In this document: piece by piece, positions 556-56,597 of the stretch
Numbering within the stretch: the first letter of the stretch is position 1
Layout: the number at the start of each line of letters is the position of its first letter
NCBI GenBank assembly: GCA_900088475.1
Contig: FLMG01001436.1
Coordinates: forward strand, 1-64,000
Direction of reading: 5' to 3'
Length of the DNA stretch: 64,000 bases
Source: Hyphochytrium catenoides
Taxonomy: Eukaryota; Protista; Hyphochytriomycota
Made by a program: the position numbers and the translations under genes
Notes under the pieces: model-generated
What the model saw: the letters and a program-made list of their open reading frames with translations, nothing else
Database searches by the model: none
What the model was told of the DNA's origin: nothing

Positions 556-3500
556 CTATCGCGGGTAACCTCTTCCGCCTCGAGCCGCCACTGCTCCTCT
601 ACCTGCAGAAGGGTGCCTCCCTCCCACGCCACCTCTACCTCTTCCAGCTGCATATTGAGCCATCATCTGGGGAGTCTGCGGTAAGATATGTCCAGGATGC
701 ATTGGAGAGCTCGCCCTAGCCTTGTTCCTTGCCCTGCAGAGGTCAGCGAAAGCATCATCCACGCATTTCTTGAGATCCACGTAGGAAGCGATCAGAATGG
801 ATTGCTCGTCCCGACTACTCAGAAGAATCTTTTCTGAGTCTCCTAGATCTAGTCGATTTAGGCACTCGACCACATGCCCAAAGTCAATAATAGGTTCCTG
901 ATGCTCTCCCACTTGATGGAAAACATAGTCTCGGAAGAGCTTTAGCAGATAGCGGTCACCTAACGGGAGGGCCCAAGAAGAAGACGATTTAGTCGTGCAT
1001 AGCATCAGTATGCTGTATAGAGGTGTTTCGAGACCAGAATTATCGCATTACCTGTTTCCGCCCAGCTTGTATCCCTGTTATACTCTGGTCTCTCGTTTAT
1101 TACGCCTAGCTTGACCATCAGCTTGAAAAGGCGGCCATTCTCACACTCCTTCATCAGCTCTCCCTCCAAATTGTCGCAGTTCGCTGACATTCTGTCTAAC
1201 TCATCCATTAAATGGCGAGTGAGGAAGGCACTGCACACATCATAGATGCTGACGGGTTTACTAAGACAAAAGACCAAGTTAGAAGCTACGACTCGCCGAA
1301 GGCAACACCACAAAGTAAGATAAGACTACAGCCGAGCGGCAGGAAAGGAAGACCTGGGCTAGACAAGGACGATGTTGAACATACAAATGAGAAGAGTGCT
1401 AGATTCAGATGCCGCAAGCAAGAATGGCACTCCTTATTATATCCCTATCTTGCCCAACCCAAGGTTTACCTGATCATGGTGACGACGAAGTTCATCATCT
1501 CCGTCGAATAATGCTGGCCAATAAACTCGATTGACTTGTTCAGTGTGCTAGTTGTCACGTTTGCACGGCAGCACAAGCTAATTGCCAGCTTTCCTAAGCT
1601 GACTACATCCTCCTACAGAGCACCTTGTTATTACTTTGGAAAAAAGATAAGGCCACAGACCCAATGACCTGGGACGGATATCATAAGAAACGTCCTAGCG
1701 AAAGAAAACCATTGAGGCAGGACGTACAACGCAAAAAGTTTATTGACATAGAACAGAAATCACATTTCTTCATGTGAGATTGAGAAGGTCAAGTAAGTCA
1801 GAGGTAGTGTGACTCCCTACCTGTTGCATCTCAACTGCAGTTTTCTTTGACTCATGCTCAATAATATCCAATAGCCCGCAGCCATTTATTCTAAAGAGTC
1901 AAAGGGTTGTGAGTCTCTACATAGTTCTCCAAGAGGCTAGTTCCGGTCTCCTACCTGACTCTGTTGTGCCCAGTTAGGAGAATATGTGCTGGATTGATTA
2001 TTCTACATGCCAGACCTGCTCCATGGACAGTGCGAAGGGCAGAAGCAACTTGCGCTATGTACGACCATATCAACGACTCCGGCAACAGTTGAAGGCCCCT
2101 CTTATCAATCAGCCTGCCGAGTCCATCAAGCGAGGTAAAAGGATCATTAGAGCCGGCTAGCATCACTCGATAGTAAGGAGTGCTGCTGACCAATGAATAA
2201 ACTCTATGCTGAGAGAGGCTAATAACATAAAGCAGCCATTAGACCTCAACTCCACACTTCATCATTCCTCGTCACATCTACCTCTTATCTCGTCTAACCT
2301 GGATTGCAAGGATTCCGCTCCAGGATGGTAATCCCTAAGTGTGAAGAGCGCTCTGTGTTGACAGAACGCCCGGTGTAATGCAATTACATTTGGATGCCGC
2401 ACATTTCTCCACGTTTCCACCACCGCGTGACAGATTTCATTGGTAGAGCGCACGTTTTCAACTCGCCTTAGCGCGTATGGAAATCCATCTTCCCGACTAA
2501 TCACCTAAACAAAGCAAGCAAGCCTTGTAAACTCAGTCTTGCCGTGTGTAAGAGGCACAAGCACGAAAAGAAGTAGCGACAATAGCCCCACGATAGCAAA
2601 AGTACTACCAGCAAGAGAATCCTCATACTGCCTTGCTTACCTTGTAAACCGACGATGGATAGCCAAATGACCCGGCGGTGCCTCTCCGAACAGCCTCATT
2701 GTCTAGAGGATAGGCGCAATAATATTGAGCAGGAATCTCCTTATATCGTTCGTCATCTGGCTCTATCTGCCTTAGAATAAGCCCAGCTTGTTGCTGGTAG
2801 GTGGCTCTCAGAGTCTCGGCCATAGACAGTGACAGAAGAGTTCTCCTTCTGGGGGTCACCATTATGGAGGGCTCCCATTCAGGAAGAGTCTCGTCTTGGG
2901 TCATGAGTCCCATATTAAGCTGAGTGGCCGTGCCACCCTCTTCTATCAGCGCCTGACTTTCCGGAACAAAGAAAGTGCATCCCCCTAAACCAATCAACTT
3001 TAGATAGGCTGCCGGACGAAGCTCAATTATTCTGATGTGGCGCATTCGAACCCGAGGCAGTACTGCCCCCACCTGCCCGCGCCGGACGAAAGGTAAGATC
3101 CCCTACACTATTACCTATCGCACCTACTTCACTACATCGATGGGCCCCTTCTGCTGCTCTTACTGCCCTTCTTCCAATCGTCGTCTTCATATAATCCCAT
3201 AAAAGACTTGACGGTGAAAAGATATTCTTACCTCTAGTGACCTGCACCATCCGCTCTTTATGTGTCGGAGTAGCGGTGAGGCCCAAGTTCAGCCTAGGTA
3301 CAACTAGCGGAGATGTGGCCTGCTTTGGGATGAAAGGCGCTGCTGTGGAATTCATTCCGACGCTTGAAGGGGAAGTTGCAGAGAGTGTAGGCGTGGGAGA
3401 CTGAAAGCTTTTCTTGTTATAGGTGTCGGAAGAGTTCGGTGCAGCTCCTCCTGCGGTCGATTCTCCACCTCCCGCAGTCTGGGCTTTTGGAGTCCACGAG

Positions 3501-44861: not shown

Positions 44862-47800
44862 ATGGCGTCGTCTAGCACGGAATTCGTAATAAGCAGAGAG
44901 CTACGGGGACATGAGGGTGCGGTAGGTGATCTCATATTCTTTTGTAAGCCCTGAAATCTGCTTACCTTTGTTCAAAACACGTGTTTGCCTCGGGGAAGGT
45001 ACGGGCGATCTGTCAGTCTCCCGCTGGCCATGTTGTCACCGGATCCATGGATTGCTCGGTGCGCTTCTGGAAACTCGAGAATGACTCTTCGTTGGTGAGG
45101 TTTCACACAGCGTGATTTCGCTGCTTTAGTGGCTGCTTTGGTACCTTGCAAGTATATAAACACATCTCTCTTCCTATTTGCTGCTTCTCTCATGATAATT
45201 TGACTTTGGAGGTAGATAGGCAGTCTTACAAGTCAGAAGGAGGGCGAGGTGGCGTCCAGCCTAACTCTCTATGAGCATTGGCACTGGGTTACAGCCTTGA
45301 CCTCAATGCCCCCAGGGGTCCTCCCAGACTGTCCGGAGGGAGGCATTGTCTCGGGCAGCATGGACAACATGATTCGCATCTATTCATTAGAGGGAACCTT
45401 GGTAAGAGAGCTTGTAGGACACATCAAGGGCGTGATCTCACTTAGCTGGACCTTGGACGGTAAGCATCCTACCTTACTCTAGCCCAAATTTAGGAGAGAT
45501 AGAGAGAACCAGTGACCTGTAGCAGGACTCTCATGTCGCTGTACTGGCAGGTAACCTAATTTCCGGTTCATGGGACGAGAGTGCGAGGATTTGGGACGTG
45601 AAGACCGCCACATGTCTAGCTACCCTGGAAGGTCATGAGAATGGAGTCTGTGTCCTAGGGCTGAGTGACGGAAACATTGCCACGGGAAGCACAGGCCGAC
45701 AGGAGGGGGACAGTATTGTGGACTATCAGATAAGAATATGGAAGGATTTCAAGGTGGTGAAGTCTGTCAGAGACCATCAGGGAGCCATACGGCAGCTGGT
45801 TATGGTTCCAGGTATAAGTTCGATCCCACAATCGTCTCCATGTTAGTACTTCTCTGCAGCTAACAGTCTCCCTGCACCGGACTTCATGCAATAATCTCTC
45901 CTGCTGTTCGGCCAGGCTCTTTGTCGTCATGCTAAGCCTTACACTATTGGACTTCCTAAAGCTTCTCAGTCTGGCCTTGCGCTCAAGCACTTGTTGGTCT
46001 GTCCTTGTCGCACCTGTCCTTCGAGTTCCTGATTGGCATTTCCCTAGTACTCACTGACAACATTCGTTCCCAGGATTTGGGTTCTTGTCGTGCTCTAATG
46101 ATGGCACAATTCGTCTTCGAAGTAATGATGGNNNNNNNNNNNNNNNNNNNNNNNNNNNNNNNNNNNNNNNNNNNNNNNNNNNNNNNNNNNAGATTAAGTT
46201 CTGGCGAGCTAGTGGCAGCTACGGATGAGGGCTCCGCAGTTATCTGGAGCCCAGATGGTAGTGCATTGCCCTTCACAACTCGATATCCATACGCAATTTA
46301 ACTCTATGACTACAACTTCTCTTGAAACGCCAAGGAACCGTGCTTCAGATTATTGGGCACCCAGCGGGTCTCTGGTGTGTTGCGAGCCTGGCGAATGGGG
46401 ATTTCGTGACAGGTTGTGAGGACAAGGTACTCCTCTCGCCTTAAGAATTGTCAAATGTTTTTTCATCCGTCCTTCTTTCCTACCCGCTATCACTCTGTAT
46501 CCTTCAATCTTTATGACAACGTCCAGACACCTCTTTGTTGGTTGATGTTTATTATCAGAGTAGCTGGGTGAAGATTGCCATCGCTCGTTTAGGTGGCGAG
46601 AGTCTTTACTAGAGAGCCGGTCCGTGGCGCTCCCGACAGTTTACGTGAAGCCTTTAATCGGGCAGTGCTAGATGCCCAGACTGCCAGAGAGCGCGCGGGC
46701 CAAAGTGTGGACGTCAGCACCCTAAAGAAATACGATAACCGCTTTTCATATTCAGGTACAGGCCTGCTCCAATTGCTTAGCCCTAGATGACCATTGCTCT
46801 ACATACTTTTTGGGTTGTTCCGGGTCTCTACGTTGAGGGTAAAACATGCTTGATTCCCTTGGACGTGATGTGTCGGTGAGCAGACGCATGGTGCACTGCT
46901 TTTCGTCATGAGATTGTGTCAGAGCTTCAAGTACCTTCCCCTGATCCTCTGGATTTCACCTGACCTTTTCGCCTCTGCAACAAAGGCAAGAGAGACGGGG
47001 CCGTACAAATGTTTGACCGCGAAGGAAAGGCTTGGGCCTGTAGTTGGAACTCTGCTTCCAAAACGTGGATAGACATTGGGGAGGTGACTGGTACCGGAAG
47101 TGGCGGCGTTGTCGACGGAGAGTCCTTTGACATGGTTATACCAGTAGAGATTGAAGACCCTGCCACTGGAGGAGTGCGGAAGCTGGAAATTGGGTAAATG
47201 GATTGAGTTAGAAGGCGATATACTATGCCTCTGGTTATTGCATAACGATCTCTCTTATTACCTTTGCTGTCCATCGCCATCTAGTGTCGTCCCTTCCGTT
47301 ATTCCCAGCTAGTCCCTGCCTCAATACACCGTGTATTCCGCGATGTCTTGCCCAGCTTTAGTAGAGGCACTAATACTTCTTAAGCTATAACCAGTCCGAC
47401 AACCCCTTCCAAGCGGCTCAGGATTTCATTAACAAGAACAATCTGAACCAGGCATATCTGCAGCAGGTAGAGTGAGGAATCTTCTTCCGTCCACTTTCCA
47501 ACCCCTTGTAGCCTTCCTCTTATCGCCTTCAGGAGCTCTTCCCTCACCATCTGAGAGAACCGCTCTCGTGCTACACCATGTAACGAGGAGACTGACAAAT
47601 CATGACGCTACAGATTGCGGATTACATCATACAGCGATCCAAGAACTATCAGGCNNNNNNNNNNNNNNNNNNNNNNNNNNNNNNNNNNNNNNNNNNNNNN
47701 NNNNNNNNNNNNNNNNNNNNCATTATGCTTCTACTTAGCGGATCTCCCACAGGGCCATCACTCCCGTCTCTGGAGCATATTCCTCCCAAACCAGAAGTCT

Positions 47801-48615
47801 ACTTCGTCTTCGATGCCATCAAGCTTGAGCCAGCTCTTCAGAAGATAATAGAGCTTAACAAATCCAGCCCCCCACCTCCAGTCGTGCTGACGGAAGACCA
47901 GCTTACCACACTCAAGGACACAGTTGATGTTCTTCAGGCGACATCGCGATGGCATGCTTCAGAATTTAGCGGACAACAGGTTAACGTACTCGCGGTTCTG
48001 GCTCTCCAGTGGCCTTTGGAAAAGCTGTTCCCCGTAGTGGACCTCCTGCGAGTTCTTGCAATTCATCCTCAAGGAGCGGCGACGCTTGTTAGTCATCCCT
48101 CAAACTTATTGCAAAGGATTGTCTCCCTTTCACAGGAGACAGAAGCCCCCATGGCCATTTCTTTACTCTCCCTAAGAGTCCTGGCCAATCTCTTTTCGAA
48201 CGGGAAATCAAGGCCAGAGGTCCTCGCAAGTGTCTCTAGATCGGAATATCTAATTTCCATAAGGCACTTGTCAAGTCATCCCAACAAGAATGTGCGCCTC
48301 TCTCTAGCTACTCTGCTCTTCAACATGAGCATCGCTGTTAAGGAGAGTGGGAAAGAAGATCACATGCTCACGCAGAAGGAAATGCTTTCGCTTGCAAGTT
48401 CTACAATCCGGAACTCACGTGAAGATGAAGACATCATCTATCGCTCAACAGTAGCGATAGGGACGTCTTTCTACTATAATGGCCCGTGCCCTGAAGAGCT
48501 GCAGAGCGAATTGTTGGCGCTAACAGAACTGGTCGAGGGCCTAGGCGGTTCTTCCAGATTGCAGGGAGTGTGCCAGGATTTGCGAGCTTTGACAAACTAT
48601 TTGAGCAGAAGATGA
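44862..48615 (+). CDS. PLAA: Phospholipase A2-activating protein / Doa1 / Ufd3 (WD40-PFU-PUL; Cdc48/p97 cofactor), multi-exon
   Basis: MASSSTEFVISRELRGHEGA|VRAI, WD40 repeats (SGSMDNMIRIY, SGSWDESARIW, LEGHENGV), PFU domain (WIDIGEV, FDMVIPVEIED, YNQSDNPFQAAQDFINKNNL) and PUL domain (QWPLEKLFPVVDLLRVL, LRVLANLF, NKNVRLSLATLLFN, YRSTVAIGT). Confidence 0.95.
46132..46190. other. Assembly gap (N run) inside PLAA
   Basis: Run of N. Confidence 1.
47655..47720. other. Assembly gap (N run) inside PLAA
   Basis: Run of N. Confidence 1.
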
Positions 48616-48861: not shown

Positions 48862-50265
48862 TTAGTCAAGCTCCTCTACCCTCTTTCCTGCCCACGACTC
48901 ATCAGGAGCAATGGCAGAGACTAGGGCCTCGACCTCTTCTACGAGCATGCTGTGACTAACCTCTTTGGCGACTAACTGTGCACGCAGAGTAGAGACTTCA
49001 GCTCTTTGCTGGCGCTTTAACTGCCGTTCCAGGGCTTGAAAGCGGCTATAGGTCCGTAGATGCTGCTTTTCTCGCTGCTCCGCCTCCGCTGTCAGTCTTC
49101 GGTTCTGCTCCTGTTCCACCTTGAGCCGCTCTCTTAGGTCCGCTTCCGTATACATCAATGAAGAGATGGTTTTTTGGAGGCAGAGAATTGCGTCCCCGTC
49201 TTCCTGTCTACTAGCCCTTTCCGCCATTAGCTGCCTTCGAAGGTCGATGATCTCCGCTTCGCTGGACTCCAAGGAAATGCCCAACAGATCCGTCTGTGAC
49301 CAATCGTCTCGGTTCCCGACGGCCATCGAAAGGCTTTCAGAGTGCATCGCCGGATATTTTTTCTGTAAAGCGAGAGAGAGAACCAGCAGCTTGAGCTCCT
49401 CTATTTCCATCGAGTGTGCTCGGAGTTTCGTTTCCATAGTTCCATTGGCGAAGCGGAGTCGGCGAAGGGCTTGGCGCAGACGCGCTACTTCAGTCCTTAG
49501 TCTCTGCTCTGGCTCTTCGTCTTCTTCGATTGCATCTCCACGTCCTCCCTCACTACCACTCTCTTCGCCCTTTTCATCCTCCGCACCCTGGCTTGCGCTA
49601 TATTCACTATCATTATTCCAATCCTCACCAGCGCTGTTCTGGTCGCCGCTCTCCTTTTCTTCTTCTTCATTACATCTCTCGCTAGCCTCTCGCTCTTGCG
49701 TCTCTTCATTACTATCTCTCTCAACCTCTGTCTGACCTCTCTCCCCTGAGTAAACATCGACTTCACATCGACGACCCACGGTCTCTGGCTTTTGTCGTTG
49801 GTCTTGTTGGAGTCGCTCAATCGCCTTGTAAGTCTGTTTGTAACGATGCTTTTTGTGACCTTTGCCTTCCTTGCCTGTTCCCGAGCTCCGATTTGCTTTC
49901 TTTTGTGCCATCGGCTCTCCCTGTCCTCTGCATGTCACTCTTTCTTTTCCCTTGCCAGGAACACTAGGTCCCATATTCGGCCTTTCTGTAAGCGGTGCGG
50001 TGAAATTCTCCTGTACGCGGAACAGCAAGCATACAAGGACTGAAGGACTCATTAGGAGAGTTGGAAGACCTATCGCCCATCTGTACCACTGACTGAAGAT
50101 TGAGAGGACCATGATGGCCATCATCCAGCAGTCGATCATGCTGCTGACTTTGGATGCGGTGGCAGTGGCATACTGCTTGCAGTCGACGATGAGTAGAGCA
50201 ATGCATATGACTTCGGGCATATGATGATGCGAACACAGAAAGTCGCTGCGGATAAGGAGTGACAT
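48862..50265 (-). CDS. Intronless protein with hydrophobic N-terminal segments, a basic/acidic linker and a long C-terminal coiled coil (possibly macoilin-like)
   Basis: Uninterrupted 467-codon ORF with a heptad-rich C-terminal half. The true start codon is uncertain. Confidence 0.7.
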   Translation of the reverse strand: MSLLIRSDFLCSHHHMPEVICIALLIVDCKQYATATASKVSSMIDCWMMAIMVLSIFSQWYRWAIGLPTLLMSPSVLVCLLFRVQENFTAPLTERPNMGPSVPGKGKERVTCRGQGEPMAQKKANRSSGTGKEGKGHKKHRYKQTYKAIERLQQDQRQKPETVGRRCEVDVYSGERGQTEVERDSNEETQEREASERCNEEEEKESGDQNSAGEDWNNDSEYSASQGAEDEKGEESGSEGGRGDAIEEDEEPEQRLRTEVARLRQALRRLRFANGTMETKLRAHSMEIEELKLLVLSLALQKKYPAMHSESLSMAVGNRDDWSQTDLLGISLESSEAEIIDLRRQLMAERASRQEDGDAILCLQKTISSLMYTEADLRERLKVEQEQNRRLTAEAEQREKQHLRTYSRFQALERQLKRQQRAEVSTLRAQLVAKEVSHSMLVEEVEALVSAIAPDESWAGKRVEELD

Positions 50266-51563
50266 CGGATCTTTGGTAGACGCTAAGAGGAGGGGGATTC
50301 CGAGATGTGCTTGGCAGGTTGAACTGTCTATATGCTGGTGGCGCTGTGCTCGGCAGAGCTTCGGCTCAACGCTAGGAATACTCTGACTCCCTTATCTCTT
50401 CCTGAACTCGCCCACACTCTCGACCGCTCTGTATCTCTGGCACACACCCCACAGAGGTCTCCTAGTCCTTGTTCGCTCTATCTGCGGAGTTTGTCTCTCT
50501 TTCTTTAGGTCGTTAACCTGTCTCTTTCACGAAGAGATATTGGTTCAAGTGTCCACGTGTTGGAATATTTAATATACGCACAGAAATCCAGGCAGGATGA
50601 CTCTAACATGGGCACTCGGTAGTCGTCCTTCCTTACAACCTTTACATACTGAGCTATTCTAATCAGTTAGTACTCCTCCTAAGCAGCAGCAGCAAGGAGA
50701 AGTACGAGTCAACAATCCTTTCGCGTGGGGGGAAGAAGTGGCGTGAGCCATCATATAAAGAGCAAGAGCGTTCTGCCATAACGCTCTCTTCTATCGTCGT
50801 TTGGCCTCGGACTGCCTACCTGCTTCATAACTAGGCGAACCCCATCCAACTAGCACGGGGACCTCTGAAGTCAACCACGGTTGCATAGTGACTAACTAAG
50901 ACTAGCCAGAAGCTTCGGACTGGAGGAGGTAGATGGACCACGGGATTGCAGGCGCCAGGCAGAGGAGAAGGGTCCAGAGGTGTCAAGAGAGCAGCTCTGA
51001 TGATTGAGTGAAGGTGAAAGGATGGGCCTGCGGCTGGTGGTGACGGTACAGCTGTGACCTTTGACAGCTTCTGACCTCTCTGTCACGATAAATCCAAGTC
51101 TAATGGAGTTCTGCCTATAAATGCTTACTTATACTTGTACACACATGAAAGCAGGAGGCATTGGTACCGACCGGTACTTGTAGATCTGTACTTACAGTAC
51201 TTGTGCTTGCCATAAGGTATCTCCGTTAGCGGCTCTCTGGCTTCTGATGTTTGTTGAGCTTCTGATGTGAGTGAGAGGAAGGATCAACGCCGAAGAAAAA
51301 CCTTCAGATAGAACGAGAGAAGCAAGCTCCAAGGCTTGTCGCGGGCTGTCAGGGCAGACCAAAGCAGTGGCAGAACCATCATCAATCGGGTCTTCCGCTA
51401 ACTGTCGCCCTCAAACTAGCTATCTCACATGGCAGCATTCTAGTAAAGGCTTTAGCTGGTCGGGTCAGCCCGGCGTTGCGTCTGCTGGTTGTGCATCCAA
51501 TTCGGTGTTTCGCATGAGTTAGGAGGATCGGGTCATTGTTAGCTGTGGTTGGGTTAAAGACGA

Positions 51564-53306
51564 ATGAGCTCTCACCAGGATATCACCTGCGATCACTGCC
51601 ACCAGAAGCCTATTGTGGGTACGCGCTTTAAGTGCGGAAACTGTCCTGACTATGATCTCTGTGAACGCTGCATTCCCAGTGCGAGAAGCATTCACGATGC
51701 TTCTCACTGTTTCCTCTATCTTGACCGCCCCACGCCACTGAGGTTGCCTGCACCAGCGCTCTCCATTGAGTTCTACCCACCAGCCCAAACTCTGCATATG
51801 GCTAAGCCCGCCCCTCAGGCAAACGTCCGGAATTCAGCTGCTTTTTCCTATCAGGCTCCAGCGCCACTTGCCACGGGACATCACAGCTCTTCGCTCTCCT
51901 TCATTGACAGAGGTCAAGCGTCCTCTGTTAATCCGCGGAGTTACACCTTAAGATCCCTAGCACCGCAAGATCTGTCTGCGGTCGTTACCAGTTCAACATT
52001 AGCTTCCTCTGTACGAAGATTCGCCCTTCGCCTCCTGCACCAACTATCGCAGCCACATCAGAGGCCGAGGCCACCGCAAGAATCTTTCATTGTCTCTCCT
52101 CTGAGTATCTGGCTTGCTCTAGGAGTCATGGCTTTGGGCGCAAGAGGTCAAACCTACAAAGAAATGTCTTCGGCTTTATACTTTGGAAATTCTAAGGCGG
52201 TGCAACAGTCTTCACTCTCAGAAGTCGAGAGAGAGTGCACAAAGGAAGATATAATTGTCTATGTGCGGGCTATCAAGGGGCGGTATGCCCCTTTGAGCTC
52301 AGCCAACCAGAGTTCGGCACTATCTCTGCGCTTGGACACTGCAACTGCTTTTATTGCTCCAGATACATTTCCCATATCTATGCACTTTCGGGACGAGGTC
52401 TGTGACAAAGCTTTTGGGGCAGAGATATTCCAGGGCCGAGGAGTCCTGCAGCCCAACATTGTCAACACTTGGGTCTCCTCTCGCACCAAGGGTCTTATCC
52501 CTTCTCTGCTTGAAGGGCCTCTCCATATAGAAACAGCCTTTGTCATTCTAAATGCGGTCTATTTGAAGGGAAAGTGGAGGCACCCCTTCCCAAAGCGCAA
52601 CACACATTCATCCATATTCTACCCGCAAAACCCGGCCATGTCGACTGTAGGCGGTAAAGATTGTCAGATGATGTACCAAGAAAGCGCATCCTTGTCCTAC
52701 TTTGAGACTGAGGCCGTCCAAGCCCTCCGTCTGCCTTACATTAGCACAACAGACTCGCAAGGTGACTTCGGCCAATCTCTTCCGTCCGTTATTGCTTACC
52801 CTCCTCATTTGAGTGCCGTTGTTCTCCTGCCCAAGCCTCCGCATTCTGTATGTGCTCTGCTGGAAATCTTGCAATCCGACTCTACCGCCTACACCGAGGT
52901 CCTCGCTGGACTTCGGGTTGAACAAGGAGAAGAGAAATCACTGGTTCAGCTTTGGCTTCCTAAGTTTGAAGCTAGATATCGGACAACCTTGAGAGATCCC
53001 TTAACAAGGATGGGCATGGCTGAGGCGTTCCACCACTCTGCAGACTTCTCAGACATGCTAAACCCGGTCAATATAGGGGACGAGAGGGCAGCTCTGGGTA
53101 TTGGAGAGATTATCCACGAAGCGTATATTAACGTCGACGAGGAGGGAACTGAGGCCGCAGCTGCGACTGCAGTTGTTTGCTTTGGAGCGGCGGCTCCACG
53201 CACTCCTCCTCGAACGGTAAAGATGCGGATAGACCATCCCTTTTTATTCCTTGTAGTGGATGATGATACGGGAGATGTATTGTTTGGTGGGCTCATGAGG
53301 TTGTAA
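51564..53306 (+). CDS. Intronless ZZ-type zinc finger-serpin fusion protein (580 aa)
   Basis: N-terminal ZZ domain CDHCHQKPIVGTRFKCGNCPDYDLCERC...H...H. Serpin core IVSPLSIWLALGVMALGARGQT, VNTWVSSRTKGLIPSLL, ILNAVYLKGKWRHPF, LWLPKFE, ADFSDM, IIHEAYINVDEEGTEAAAATAV and MRIDHPFLFLV. Confidence 0.95.
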   Translation: MSSHQDITCDHCHQKPIVGTRFKCGNCPDYDLCERCIPSARSIHDASHCFLYLDRPTPLRLPAPALSIEFYPPAQTLHMAKPAPQANVRNSAAFSYQAPAPLATGHHSSSLSFIDRGQASSVNPRSYTLRSLAPQDLSAVVTSSTLASSVRRFALRLLHQLSQPHQRPRPPQESFIVSPLSIWLALGVMALGARGQTYKEMSSALYFGNSKAVQQSSLSEVERECTKEDIIVYVRAIKGRYAPLSSANQSSALSLRLDTATAFIAPDTFPISMHFRDEVCDKAFGAEIFQGRGVLQPNIVNTWVSSRTKGLIPSLLEGPLHIETAFVILNAVYLKGKWRHPFPKRNTHSSIFYPQNPAMSTVGGKDCQMMYQESASLSYFETEAVQALRLPYISTTDSQGDFGQSLPSVIAYPPHLSAVVLLPKPPHSVCALLEILQSDSTAYTEVLAGLRVEQGEEKSLVQLWLPKFEARYRTTLRDPLTRMGMAEAFHHSADFSDMLNPVNIGDERAALGIGEIIHEAYINVDEEGTEAAAATAVVCFGAAAPRTPPRTVKMRIDHPFLFLVVDDDTGDVLFGGLMRL

Positions 53307-53934
53307 CGCGGAAACAGCTTCTGACACCGACTAAAAGACGCAGACTACAATGGTTGATAGTGAAAGGCTGAGCTGAAGCAATCGGCTAGACAAGAGCCGC
53401 GTCTCCTTCTTGGAGTTTTGCCGTGACGTGGGTTCATTGATCAGAAGCCAACCTAGGTTCAATATTCTCGCTTGGAAGACAGTCGGTGGTTGTACTGGAT
53501 TAAAGCTGATAGTGAAGGATGAGTCCGAAGTGCCAGGAACTGTGTAGTCTGAAGTGTCAGATAGTGGTCTTCCACAGCCGTGGAGAGATGTCTCAGCAAA
53601 GTCAAGGTCTAGACGCGGTAAAGTTACGCAAGCCCCTTCGGAGAAGTGGTGATGGCTCGGTATTGGGGAAGCCCTTCTTCTTTCGTCTGTAGGCAGCCTC
53701 AAGGGTCAAAAGCATAGAAGCGACCGTTGCAGCATCGGCAATCCCATCTCCAACAAAAGTACTGCCCGTTTGGTCAGCGACGCCTGTTAAGCTGTTGATA
53801 GCCAACCTCCTCAACCATTTTGTAATGATATCTGGGGTGGACTCCGGGCAAAGCCCATGACGTTACGCCGACCGGGAAGGATAGCTGTGACCACCACCAT
53901 TCTTAGCAGCAGATATTGTGCATTGAGTAACGTC

Positions 53935-56597
53935 TCAATCCTCAGCGAGGTCTTCGTCGCCCAAAAGGATTGGCTTTTTCCATTGGGCCTCCCTAGTCCG
54001 CTTGTGATAGTAATAGTAACGCCCAGATTCCTTATCAAAGACTTTGTCGTAGGTCTGTCGGACGAGCTGTCGGGCATCAGTTTGGGCCTTCCGCATCCGG
54101 CACAAAGACTGAATCTGCTTCCAGACGACTTTCAGATACAAGACTGATGATGTGGCTGAATCAGTGCTTGGACTCAAGCATTCTTACCTTTGCAGCGGCT
54201 GTGTCAGTGTTCAGCTCCACCATCTGGCTCTTCCGACTCTTTTTGGCTTTCAGGTTTTCCTGTAGCTGAAAGTCTTCGATGTCCAGGTTGCGGAAGACCT
54301 TCGGTTTCTCCCAGGTCGACTAACGGGGGATGATAAGTCCAATAATCGAGAGTCGTTAGAAGAGGGCCCAGGCTTAAGAGATATAAAGAAATATGTAAAG
54401 CAGCACATCTTAATCAGCAAGAGATCTACCCTCCCCAGCGTGTTCGTTGACACTGCCCTTACCTCCTTCGTCTTCGCATTGTAGTAGTAAAACAGGCCCG
54501 TTCTTGGATCTTTTAGCTTTTGAAAGGAGGAACTGTAAGGGTAGGAGGGGCATCATATAGAGGAGCGTCCAGCGATAAGTCTCAAGCCAGCAGAACAATC
54601 GCGTTAAACACGGAGTACAAACGCACCAGAGCAATCTCCGAAACTTCGTTTTTGCTAAGTTTCCTTCCAGAGCCGAGACTATTTTCCTGAAGCCAATGTT
54701 TGGGAATGATGAGAACACGACAGAGAAAGAGAGACAATGCCCGCAAGTCACGGAGTCACGAAGAAGTGCCGCAAACTGGCATAAAGAATCCGTACAAAGG
54801 AACTGAGTGATGCCTCTAACTCTGGAGATAGAAGTAGAAGGCCGAATCTTCCCTACCTGACCGCCAGTTCTGGATTTTTTACGAGGAAGAGGTAACGTGC
54901 TTGTCGTTGAGGGTTAAAGTATCTCAGATGCGCTATGCCCCGAGGCCTTGCCCACTGGGACTTGCCTGTTTTAATGCTATAGAAATATTCTGGCGTTCCT
55001 CGTTCAGCGTTAGCCGGGACACACTGATAAGTTTGAAGAAGGAGACGCAGTCGCTCACGATAGGCTGTCTTTTTTCTGTAGAGGCATTGAATCATCACAG
55101 CCGCTCGGTTGTAGTCCGATGCTCCCAAAGGGTAGCGGAAGAGAGAGATGTTACTAGTCCCCGGTCTCAGAGGTGGTCTCTTGGAGGAGTTGGAGATAGA
55201 GGACAGACTGGCATCAGTCTGAGCCGTAGTGGCTCGTGCGGGCGGCTCTCTAGCTTCATTGGGTGTTGACGTTCCCTCTGGCAATGGTGGTGGAAGGTCT
55301 TGGCTAACACCCGTCAGACCCTTCATTATGCTTCACATAGAGAGAACACCGATTTCAATAGACATAGACAGATGAAGGGTGAGGGGTAAGCATCGCCTCT
55401 GTGAGCGATTCAGTGGTAAATACAAGCACTTGCTTCATACCGTAGGCTTTCCTCTGCCTTATACATTTTCGCTAGTGCCTGTCTAACAGCCTCAGTGTTT
55501 TGTTTGAGCTCTTTTTCCAGGGACTTGGCCCTGCTGTTTGAGGAAGTGAGAATTCGAAGCCTGACCGACCCTCTGCTCTTAAGTATGCGCATGTCGCCTT
55601 TCTCCATCACCTCCCTCACTTCAGCCGTTAGGGCTTGCACCTTCTGCACAGCTTCAACTCTAGTCTCGACTTGTTCCCTGCAGAGAAAGGAAGAGCGACA
55701 TCTACTTAGGCCCAAATGGGGTACCCATGATCGTTTTGTATGCGACAGCGTACCGCTTAGACTTTCCGAGTCCAGACTCGCGCCACTCTTCAGTCTCTGT
55801 GAGAGGGCGAAAGATCGCCAGTTCACATTAGCTAAGTAACACATAACTAGAAAGCTGAAGAGATATTGGGTCAAGCGAGAGATCGTGGAGAGCTAAATGA
55901 CGCTTGTGCCAGCTTAGAAAACGTGGAACGCTTCTTACTGAGTTCTACTCTCACTTACCATCAACGTCCACCCAGCGATGTGGTTGGCGATGCCATGGAT
56001 GACACTTTATAAAGCAGTCCTCACAGCAGAAACCTTTCGTTTTGGGCTGAAGCCTAAGAAGGGAGAATAACACTCATTAGGGTCATGTGGCCTATCTTGA
56101 TAAGCACCGGCAGGTAGCTTACTCTGCACAGCTAAAGCATTTCCTAGATGCAGGCTTTCCCTCACAGGTTACCCGCATGCTACAGAGAATCTAGGGATGG
56201 GATCATAGAAGGTTAGCCTTTGAGCTCAACCTTCAGAAAACACGCTAATGCAAGGGTGATGTAGCAGTCTTGAAGAGTTCAAGAGATATATGAGTTATTT
56301 CTCGAAGAGTTCAAGAGGTATATGAGACTGACTTACCAGCTGTGGCTGTTCATCAAGACCCGCGGGATTGAGCTTGGGCAACTTTCCCGGATCCGTCTTT
56401 TTACTCTCAGCAGTTAGGACTCTGCCAGCCTGGAGTGGTCTCCGGCGAGATATGGGTCTCCGAGAACTATGCTTGATAAACGCAAGAGGCTGTGGCAACG
56501 CTTCTTCTGGCCAAAGCGGATAGACTGAAATGGAACCATCCGCTTCATAGTCTCCCTCAGAGGGAGCAATCATCACAGGGAGCTCCTCCAGCGCCAT
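53935..56597 (-). CDS. B-box-like zinc finger, coiled coil and tandem IQ/WW-domain protein, multi-exon (5' end uncertain, may extend to 56804)
   Basis: Spliced CEGKPASRKCFSCAE|LQPKTKGFCCEDCFIKCHPWHRQPHRW. IQ motifs AAVMIQCLYRKKTAYR and AAAK|IQSLCRMRKAQ. WW-like units YFYSIKTGKSQWARP, FYYYNAKTKE|STWEKP and YYYYHKRTREAQWKKP. Confidence 0.8.

Follow-up and report, generated by a model that had tools for sequence, protein, structure and literature searches.

Contig FLMG01001436.1 of the stramenopile Hyphochytrium catenoides (assembly GCA_900088475.1) was analysed over a window of 64,000 nucleotides (positions 1 to 64,000, forward strand), in which one intronless gene at 51564..53306 encodes a ZZ zinc finger joined through a flexible linker to a full serpin. 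Serpins and ZZ fingers are each well understood, and no study was found of a protein combining both. The fusion is kept across a chytrid, Onygenales and this stramenopile, and it is a conserved domain variant of a well-known inhibitor family that is present in databases, with no literature found on it. Our preference, a slight one, is for a model that, taken as a whole, sees in this locus a real single-exon nuclear gene for a cytosolic SERPINB3-like protease trap, whose ZZ finger would read protein N-termini and whose present distribution would involve gene transfer.

Gene and domain architecture

The features of the gene are listed below in coordinates of the window.

51555..51557 (+): in-frame TAA, two codons 5' of the ATG, read directly in the sequence
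51564..53306 (+): ZZ-linker-serpin gene, an intronless open reading frame (ORF) with ATG start, 580 codons plus stop
51573..51722 (+): ZZ zinc finger, residues 4-53 (Pfam PF00569, PDB matches, predicted local distance difference test, pLDDT, about 90)
51738..51989 (+): Ala/Ser/Pro-rich linker, predicted to be disordered, residues 59-142 (composition, pLDDT below 50, weak conservation among homologues)
51990..53303 (+): serpin domain, residues 143-580, Pfam match 150-576 (Pfam, PDB matches, AlphaFold2)
52185..52313 (+): insertion early in the serpin domain, about residues 208-250 (alignment; model confidence low in part)
53139..53201 (+): reactive centre loop, from hinge P17 Glu526 to P4' Arg546 (hinge count, loop alignment)
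53304..53306 (+): stop codon (ORF listing)

The ZZ-serpin ORF is the longest in the window, where only four ORFs reach at least 250 amino acids, and its GC content at third codon positions (0.51) is host-like. The TAA at 51555..51557 sets the 5' limit of the ORF, barring a spliced upstream exon. The original prediction, made from the letters of the sequence, had described a single intronless ORF joining a full ZZ domain, a Pro/Ser/Ala linker of about 90 residues and a full serpin that lacks a signal peptide, and all of its sequence statements are correct. The ORF listing and Pfam agree on the architecture, and residues 56-145 hold 14 Ala, 14 Ser and 12 Pro, the linker measuring about 85 residues when it is delimited by disorder (residues 59-142). 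By eye, no hydrophobic leader was seen at the N-terminus, which is the ZZ finger itself. Unspliced in-frame introns at the insertions around residues 208-250 and 395-412 were considered and rejected, since the frame is open throughout and the fungal homologues have insertions at the second site too.

Two further sequencing runs of this organism supplied contigs for comparison over this region. An independent contig of 2099 nt spans 51361-53459, including the entire ORF, with seven substitutions and no gaps, and the read depth over the ORF equals that of its flanks, which shows that the fusion is not an assembly artefact. The differences between the read assemblies look allelic. Their density is about 2.7-fold lower within the ORF (0.40%) than in the flanks (1.09%; Fisher p = 0.026), no indel falls in the ORF against five upstream, and the 580 codons are open in both haplotypes. 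The upstream intergenic segment 50800-51200 is far more polymorphic than the gene between the read assemblies: of the nine substitutions and five insertions found upstream, eight and four fall there, the longest insertion measuring 5 nt.

The serpin domain covers positions 3-365 of the 370 in Pfam PF00079 (E 2.9e-70), and no column with conservation of 90% or more in an alignment of 61 serpins is lost in the query. An AlphaFold2 model built from this 61-sequence alignment has pLDDT of about 90 in the ZZ finger and mostly above 90 in the serpin, with residues 59-142 and 538-548 below 50. Compared with solved serpins, it gives template-modelling (TM) scores, normalised to the target, of 0.76-0.87. 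The best solved matches of the serpin domain are intracellular clade B and arthropod serpins, including PAI-2, tick serpins and SERPINB1. From an alignment to loop-deleted PAI-2, we place the insertion at about residues 208-250 in the loop between helices C and D, a loop that is a feature of clade B (PMC4136820). On this placement, the query shows the clade B (ov-serpin) traits of a C-D loop and of no visible signal peptide; the tree described below held no identified clade B sequence, and the resemblance is treated as functional and not as membership.

The ZZ finger is recognised by Pfam PF00569 at residues 4-41 (E 4.9e-11; 42.7 bits against a cut-off of 21.4). Its eight zinc ligands, Cys9, Cys12, Cys24, Cys27, Cys33, Cys36, His44 and His48, form three Cys-x2-Cys pairs and one His-x3-His pair, equivalent to two zinc sites. 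In the HMMER alignment to structures of the p62 ZZ domain, the acidic triad Asp10, Asp29 and Asp31 corresponds to p62 Asp129, Asp147 and Asp149, and His13 aligns with Asn132, which bears out what had been proposed from the sequence for these four positions. Moreover, the eight ligands, the triad and the serpin hinge are invariant in the seven ZZ-serpins that were aligned. The nearest solved ZZ domains found in the PDB search are those of HERC2, p62, MIB1, fission-yeast Nbr1, KCMF1, BIG and PRT1, with E-values against solved ZZ structures from 1e-11 to 1e-5 (1e-11 to 1e-10 for HERC2 and p62). Many of the top entries are chimeras or complexes with N-terminal peptides. In p62, the substitution D129A abolishes the binding of N-degrons, and the position of Asn132 sets the N-degron specificity (PMC8038991).

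The query shares with p62, NBR1, HERC2, KCMF1 and PRT1 the ZZ fold, the eight zinc ligands and the three Asp of the N-terminus pocket. These proteins, however, also carry partner domains (PB1, UBA, LIR, HECT, RING), none of which is present in the query, and the NBR1-like match (P0014) has NBR1-FW and PB1 next to its ZZ where the query has neither. A p62/NBR1-type autophagy receptor was therefore rejected: Pfam finds ZZ and Serpin only, with no PB1 or UBA, and no motif resembling an LC3-interacting region (LIR) was seen by eye in the linker. The link to autophagy that had been suggested for the protein is thus not borne out. Proteins with repeated ZZ fingers do exist, such as P0017, with eight ZZ in 620 residues, and P0023, with a RING and four ZZ. 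Together with P0024, these matches of the exhaustive search described below hold the ZZ fingers nearest to that of the query.

The SERPINB3-like reactive loop

The hinge EEGTEAAAAT follows the inhibitory consensus, with Glu526 at P17, Gly528 at P15, Thr529 at P14 and Ala531-534 at P12-P9. Counting from Glu526 gives Cys539-Phe540-Gly541-Ala542 as P4-P1 and Ala543 as P1', in agreement with the register first proposed (C-F-G-A followed by A), and places the canonical scissile bond between Ala542 and Ala543. Of its 17 positions from P17 to P1, the loop shares 14 with human SERPINB3 (PDB 4zk0/2zv6), Phe-Gly (P3-P2) being in register and, as in SERPINB3, followed by small residues and then Pro. The pattern Val-Val-x-Phe-Gly, two or three small residues and Pro is of the SERPINB3/SCCA1 type.

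SERPINB3 is likewise intracellular and has no signal peptide, and its hinge and P-side are nearly equal to those of the query; the overall identity is about 25% and, unlike the query, SERPINB3 has no ZZ or other extra domain. Since the query sits in a clade of fungal and environmental serpins, and fungal serpins are unclassified orphans, the likeness of the two loops is probably convergent. Cleavage of SERPINB3 by cathepsins takes place at Gly353-Ser354, a bond that precedes the canonical one by one residue, with Phe352 occupying the S2 pocket. SERPINB3 inhibits across protease classes, its cysteine-protease targets being cathepsins K, L and S (PMC7863939), and a link to specificity for cysteine proteases has been drawn for its Gly351 and Phe352 (PMC4136820). 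Both SERPINB3 and nematode SRP-6 protect the cytosol from calpain and from lysosomal cysteine proteases that have leaked out (PMC8755814).

The loop being nearly that of SERPINB3, with Phe540 as the key residue, cysteine proteases are at least as likely as elastase-like serine proteases to be the target. Judged by the loop, a papain-like (clan CA) cysteine protease is most likely, with serine proteases accepting a small P1 as the main alternative. The original prediction of an inhibitory-type serpin holds for the hinge and the P1 register, and its target class is refined toward cysteine proteases.

The conservation of the loop was followed in a scan of 166 reactive loops, 10 from ZZ-serpins and 156 from other serpins. 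Phe-Gly is present at P3-P2 in nine of the ten ZZ-serpins, counting the Dinochytrium protein, in which it stands one residue later, at P2-P1. Among the 156 other loops only six have it: those of three relatives from the Onygenales, the two loops of a single tandem serpin and that of a serpin which is probably bacterial.

Related proteins in fungi and origin of the gene

Plain serpins and one NBR1-like protein were all that came out of word-indexed homologue searches, whether the query was the whole protein or an alignment of two sequences; the ZZ-serpins were missed. An exhaustive HMMER search did retrieve them, its best 150 matches including five representatives that carry both domains. Collinear ZZ-linker-serpin proteins are encoded by Emergomyces pasteurianus (OJD18018.1, UniProt A0A1J9PQ36, named only "ZZ-type domain-containing protein"), Arachnomyces sp., Onygenales sp. 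and Emmonsiellopsis sp., and a further search added Emergomyces africanus, Blastomyces silverae and B. percursus. In the chytrid Dinochytrium kinnereticum (KAJ3208268.1) the entire fusion is one unbroken genomic ORF, and in Emergomyces the ZZ coding region is split over two exons, the frame of the second continuing through the linker and the serpin. At least three unrelated genomes thus encode the fusion contiguously.

The fungal proteins resemble the query in having an N-terminal ZZ, a variable linker, a full serpin with an inhibitory hinge and with Phe-Gly near the scissile bond, and no signal peptide. They are 27-32% identical to it. They differ in the residue after the second ZZ Cys, which is Gly in the fungal ZZ-serpins and His in the query, and the Onygenales genes have an intron within the ZZ, whereas those of the query and of Dinochytrium are single ORFs. 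The host of the query is a stramenopile, and the other ZZ-serpin hosts that were identified are true Fungi.

The annotation of Paracoccidioides lutzii treats PAAG_05958 as a plain serpin. At 175-290 nt upstream of the annotated start lies the first half of a ZZ, 74% identical to that of Emergomyces. On KN294007.1 (locus L091) the two ZZ halves, at 2713-2826 and 3013-3087, have an intron-sized gap between them, with the second half inside the gene model. From these coordinates, the public model looks truncated, and its protein would be a ZZ-serpin. An environmental member (L002:48-1844, on a 1995-nt contig of JGI sample 3300030671) has a Cys-rich N-terminal stretch, two ZZ and a serpin. Its contig, which consists of the ORF and short flanks, would fit a transcript.

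No hidden ZZ exon was found within 3 kb upstream of the ZZ-less serpins of Chytridium and Phlyctochytrium, and no ZZ on the contigs of the ZZ-less environmental serpins. A metagenome scan with the family alignment gave 80 loci with plain, mostly prokaryote-like serpins, none of which matched the ZZ part. A literature search returned no paper on the combination of ZZ and serpin, and a full-text search with the locus tags of the fungal ZZ-serpins found nothing. The suggestion that this architecture had not been described thus stands for the literature searched and fails for the databases, which hold entries from Onygenales and a chytrid. A 2021 phylogeny of the serpin superfamily leaves the fungal serpins as unclassified orphans (PMC8233489), and the "mycoserpin" of 2026 is a single-domain protein of 365 residues (PMC13236867).

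In a maximum-likelihood tree of 56 serpin domains, the query falls in a clade with 98% bootstrap and 95% support in the Shimodaira-Hasegawa-like approximate likelihood ratio test, together with the Onygenales and Dinochytrium ZZ-serpins, the ZZ-less serpins of Chytridium and Phlyctochytrium and three environmental serpins. The environmental serpin with two ZZ lies outside this clade, on a long branch. A single clade of ZZ-bearers is not rejected by the approximately unbiased test (p = 0.41). Separate phylogenies of the two domains had been proposed together with the original prediction; in that of the serpin domain the clade of the query is well supported, and that of the ZZ domain did not resolve. 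In our reading, the fusion would have one origin and a patchy distribution.

According to its published description, the H. catenoides genome is diploid and has 3.64 introns per gene, the exons measuring about 228 bp; its first assembly came to 107 Mb (PMC5795050). The few long ORFs and the allelic variants in the window agree with these features, and the 1.7-kb intronless gene stands out in such an intron-rich genome. Because the gene is intronless in an intron-rich host, its relatives are fungal and its base composition is host-like, it is likely that the gene passed by horizontal transfer between the hyphochytrid lineage and a chytrid-like fungus, in either direction. The locus is a clean candidate for transfer between fungi and pseudofungi, being intronless next to intron-bearing neighbours, with all identified members of its clade fungal.

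The neighbouring genes are ordinary eukaryotic ones (Sec23, a BT1 transporter, a PUL-domain gene and a WW-domain gene), several in apparently intron-split pieces. Fungal contamination was rejected because the gene is flanked by such host genes at equal read depth. The other features observed around the gene are listed below.

47653-47721: run of N (assembly gap) within the ORF that precedes the PUL-domain coding region
47722-48612 (+): PUL-domain coding region, Doa1/Ufd3/PLAA-like (Pfam E 2.4e-45)
48862-50265 (-): ORF of 467 codons, divergent from the ZZ-serpin gene, with an acidic Glu-rich region and a long coiled coil; all Pfam matches are below threshold
53935-54177 (-): convergent downstream ORF with a WW domain (Pfam E 3.2e-09)
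54853-55326 (-): convergent downstream ORF with a WW-like stretch and, by eye, an IQ-like motif; no Pfam match

Proposed mechanism and alternatives

In the tethered model favoured above, the serpin part would act as a cytosolic suicide-substrate trap, its likeliest targets being papain-like cysteine proteases that are active in the cytosol or leak into it. Phe540 would occupy the S2 pocket, and the cut would fall beside Gly541/Ala542; small-P1 serine proteases of the elastase or subtilisin type would be the alternative targets. The acidic pocket of the ZZ, as in related ZZ domains, would hold a free alpha-amino group, and the finger on its flexible linker would read a protein N-terminus and so bring the trap to a protease or to a proteolytic product. 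The weakest steps of this model are the target class and the ZZ ligand.

There are two precedents for serpins that an additional element guides to a site or a partner, and neither reads N-termini. Chicken MENT, which is among the PDB matches, is aimed by a chromatin-binding M-loop, an internal loop and not a separate domain. The anaerobic gut fungi have a serpin with a dockerin (homologue P0025); here the dockerin is C-terminal and the protein is taken as secreted.

Several observations weigh against the tethered model or parts of it. The AlphaFold2 model has its loop inserted and most resembles solved serpins in the cleaved or latent form; this predicted state shows that the hinge can thread into sheet A, and neither proves nor disproves a metastable native state. 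The environmental member with two ZZ has P1 Arg and no Phe-Gly, and a plain serpin has the loop Gly-Leu-Phe-Gly-Ser-Ala-Gln-Pro-Pro, nearly equal to those of the query and SERPINB3, so that loop and ZZ are not strictly coupled. This plain serpin (L088:843-2075, 410 residues) adjoins a Cpn10 (GroES) gene and is probably bacterial. To our knowledge, Dikarya have few cathepsin-L-like enzymes, and the shared target may therefore be another clan CA enzyme or a serine protease. On the side of the ZZ, the position of p62 Asn132 is occupied by His in the query, Gly in the fungal ZZ-serpins and Gln in HERC2. An Arg/N-degron preference therefore cannot be assumed, and the kind of N-terminus that the predicted pocket would recognise cannot be read from the sequence. 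Moreover, the ZZ tree has 54 columns, too few for resolution, and the fingers of multi-ZZ/RING and NBR1-like proteins give the query ZZ higher scores than those of the fungal ZZ-serpins do, which makes an independent or replaced ZZ possible. Finally, a search for sequencing runs gave three DNA runs that contain this stretch and three tiny runs that lack it, and a transcript may start downstream of the ZZ in H. catenoides. Six of the seven differences within the ORF change an amino acid, which weak constraint could explain; as this share does not differ from the neutral expectation of 76%, the constraint shows in the density of substitutions and not in their kind.

The canonical register, which gives P1 Ala, would also suit a plain intracellular inhibitor of serine proteases (elastase-, proteinase K- or HtrA-like, with P1 Ala, Gly or Ser) in which the ZZ is a generic interaction or dimerisation module. 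The top whole-domain matches to PAI-2, tick serpins and SERPINB1 fit such an inhibitor, and the ZZ domains of dystrophin, dystrobrevin and CBP, which bind internal surfaces and not N-termini, are among the weaker PDB matches. However, the best ZZ matches belong to the N-terminus-binding class and not to that of dystrophin and CBP, the three pocket Asp are invariant across the aligned ZZ-serpins, and a conserved Phe-Gly before a small residue is the cysteine-protease signature of SERPINB3 and not a typical elastase loop; we consider this alternative unlikely. It is decidedly less probable still that the neo-N-terminus left by cleavage of the serpin's own loop is what the ZZ binds, in cis or in trans, so that the spent serpin or its complexes are marked or clustered. 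In either register, the residue newly exposed would be a small one, Ala, Ser, Gly or Thr, in the query and in the majority of the fungal members, with Pro two to four residues after it, and the linker of about 85 residues, flexible in the model, could reach any face of the serpin. The ZZ domains of HERC2 (the closest solved ZZ), p300 and ZZZ3 were crystallised as chimeras with the N-terminus of histone H3, which begins with Ala. Against this, Pro on the P' side is common in serpins that have no ZZ, such as SERPINB3 and the plain serpin P0158, the canonical P1' is Met in the Onygenales sp. member, and the sample amounts to three or four independent lineages only.

A fusion with no function in H. 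catenoides, whether a weakly constrained or silent recent acquisition or a plain serpin made from an internal start, would accord with the non-synonymous differences, with the lack of introns in an intron-rich genome and with the run search, in which the runs that contain the gene were of DNA. Both haplotypes are open, however, with no indel and a substitution density well below that of the flanks, all conserved serpin columns and all ZZ ligands are kept, and the same fusion is kept in distant fungi, which together make this reading improbable. We regard as far-fetched a decoy or trap for ATG4 in which Phe-Gly mimics the processed C-terminal tail of Atg8/LC3 and a p62/NBR1-like ZZ provides a tie to autophagy. 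ATG4, a clan CA cysteine protease in all lineages concerned, does cleave after Phe-Gly, the dipeptide is conserved in register across the family, and the NBR1-like protein is the second-best ZZ match (57% identity). A dipeptide is nevertheless weak evidence, ATG4 recognises the folded body of Atg8, the PB1, UBA and LIR elements were not found, and SERPINB3 shares the Phe-Gly yet targets cathepsins.

Reactive loops usually diverge fast between serpins. The keeping of the fusion in distant lineages together with a conserved loop argues for a specific and conserved intracellular protease target and for a real role of the ZZ. It is doubtful, at present, that these proteins make up a new functional class of inhibitors, conserved from chytrids and Onygenales to a stramenopile by way of transfer, in which a serpin trap is tethered to a reader of N-termini that aims the trap or flags spent complexes. 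We know of no earlier protease inhibitor that is directed or reported by the recognition of N-termini. Were the ZZ to read a proteolytic neo-N-terminus, the N-degron field would be linked to protease control. Paracoccidioides, Blastomyces and Emergomyces are agents of systemic mycoses. Serpins are rare and little studied in fungi, and the target or the localisation of a ZZ-serpin alone would be new.

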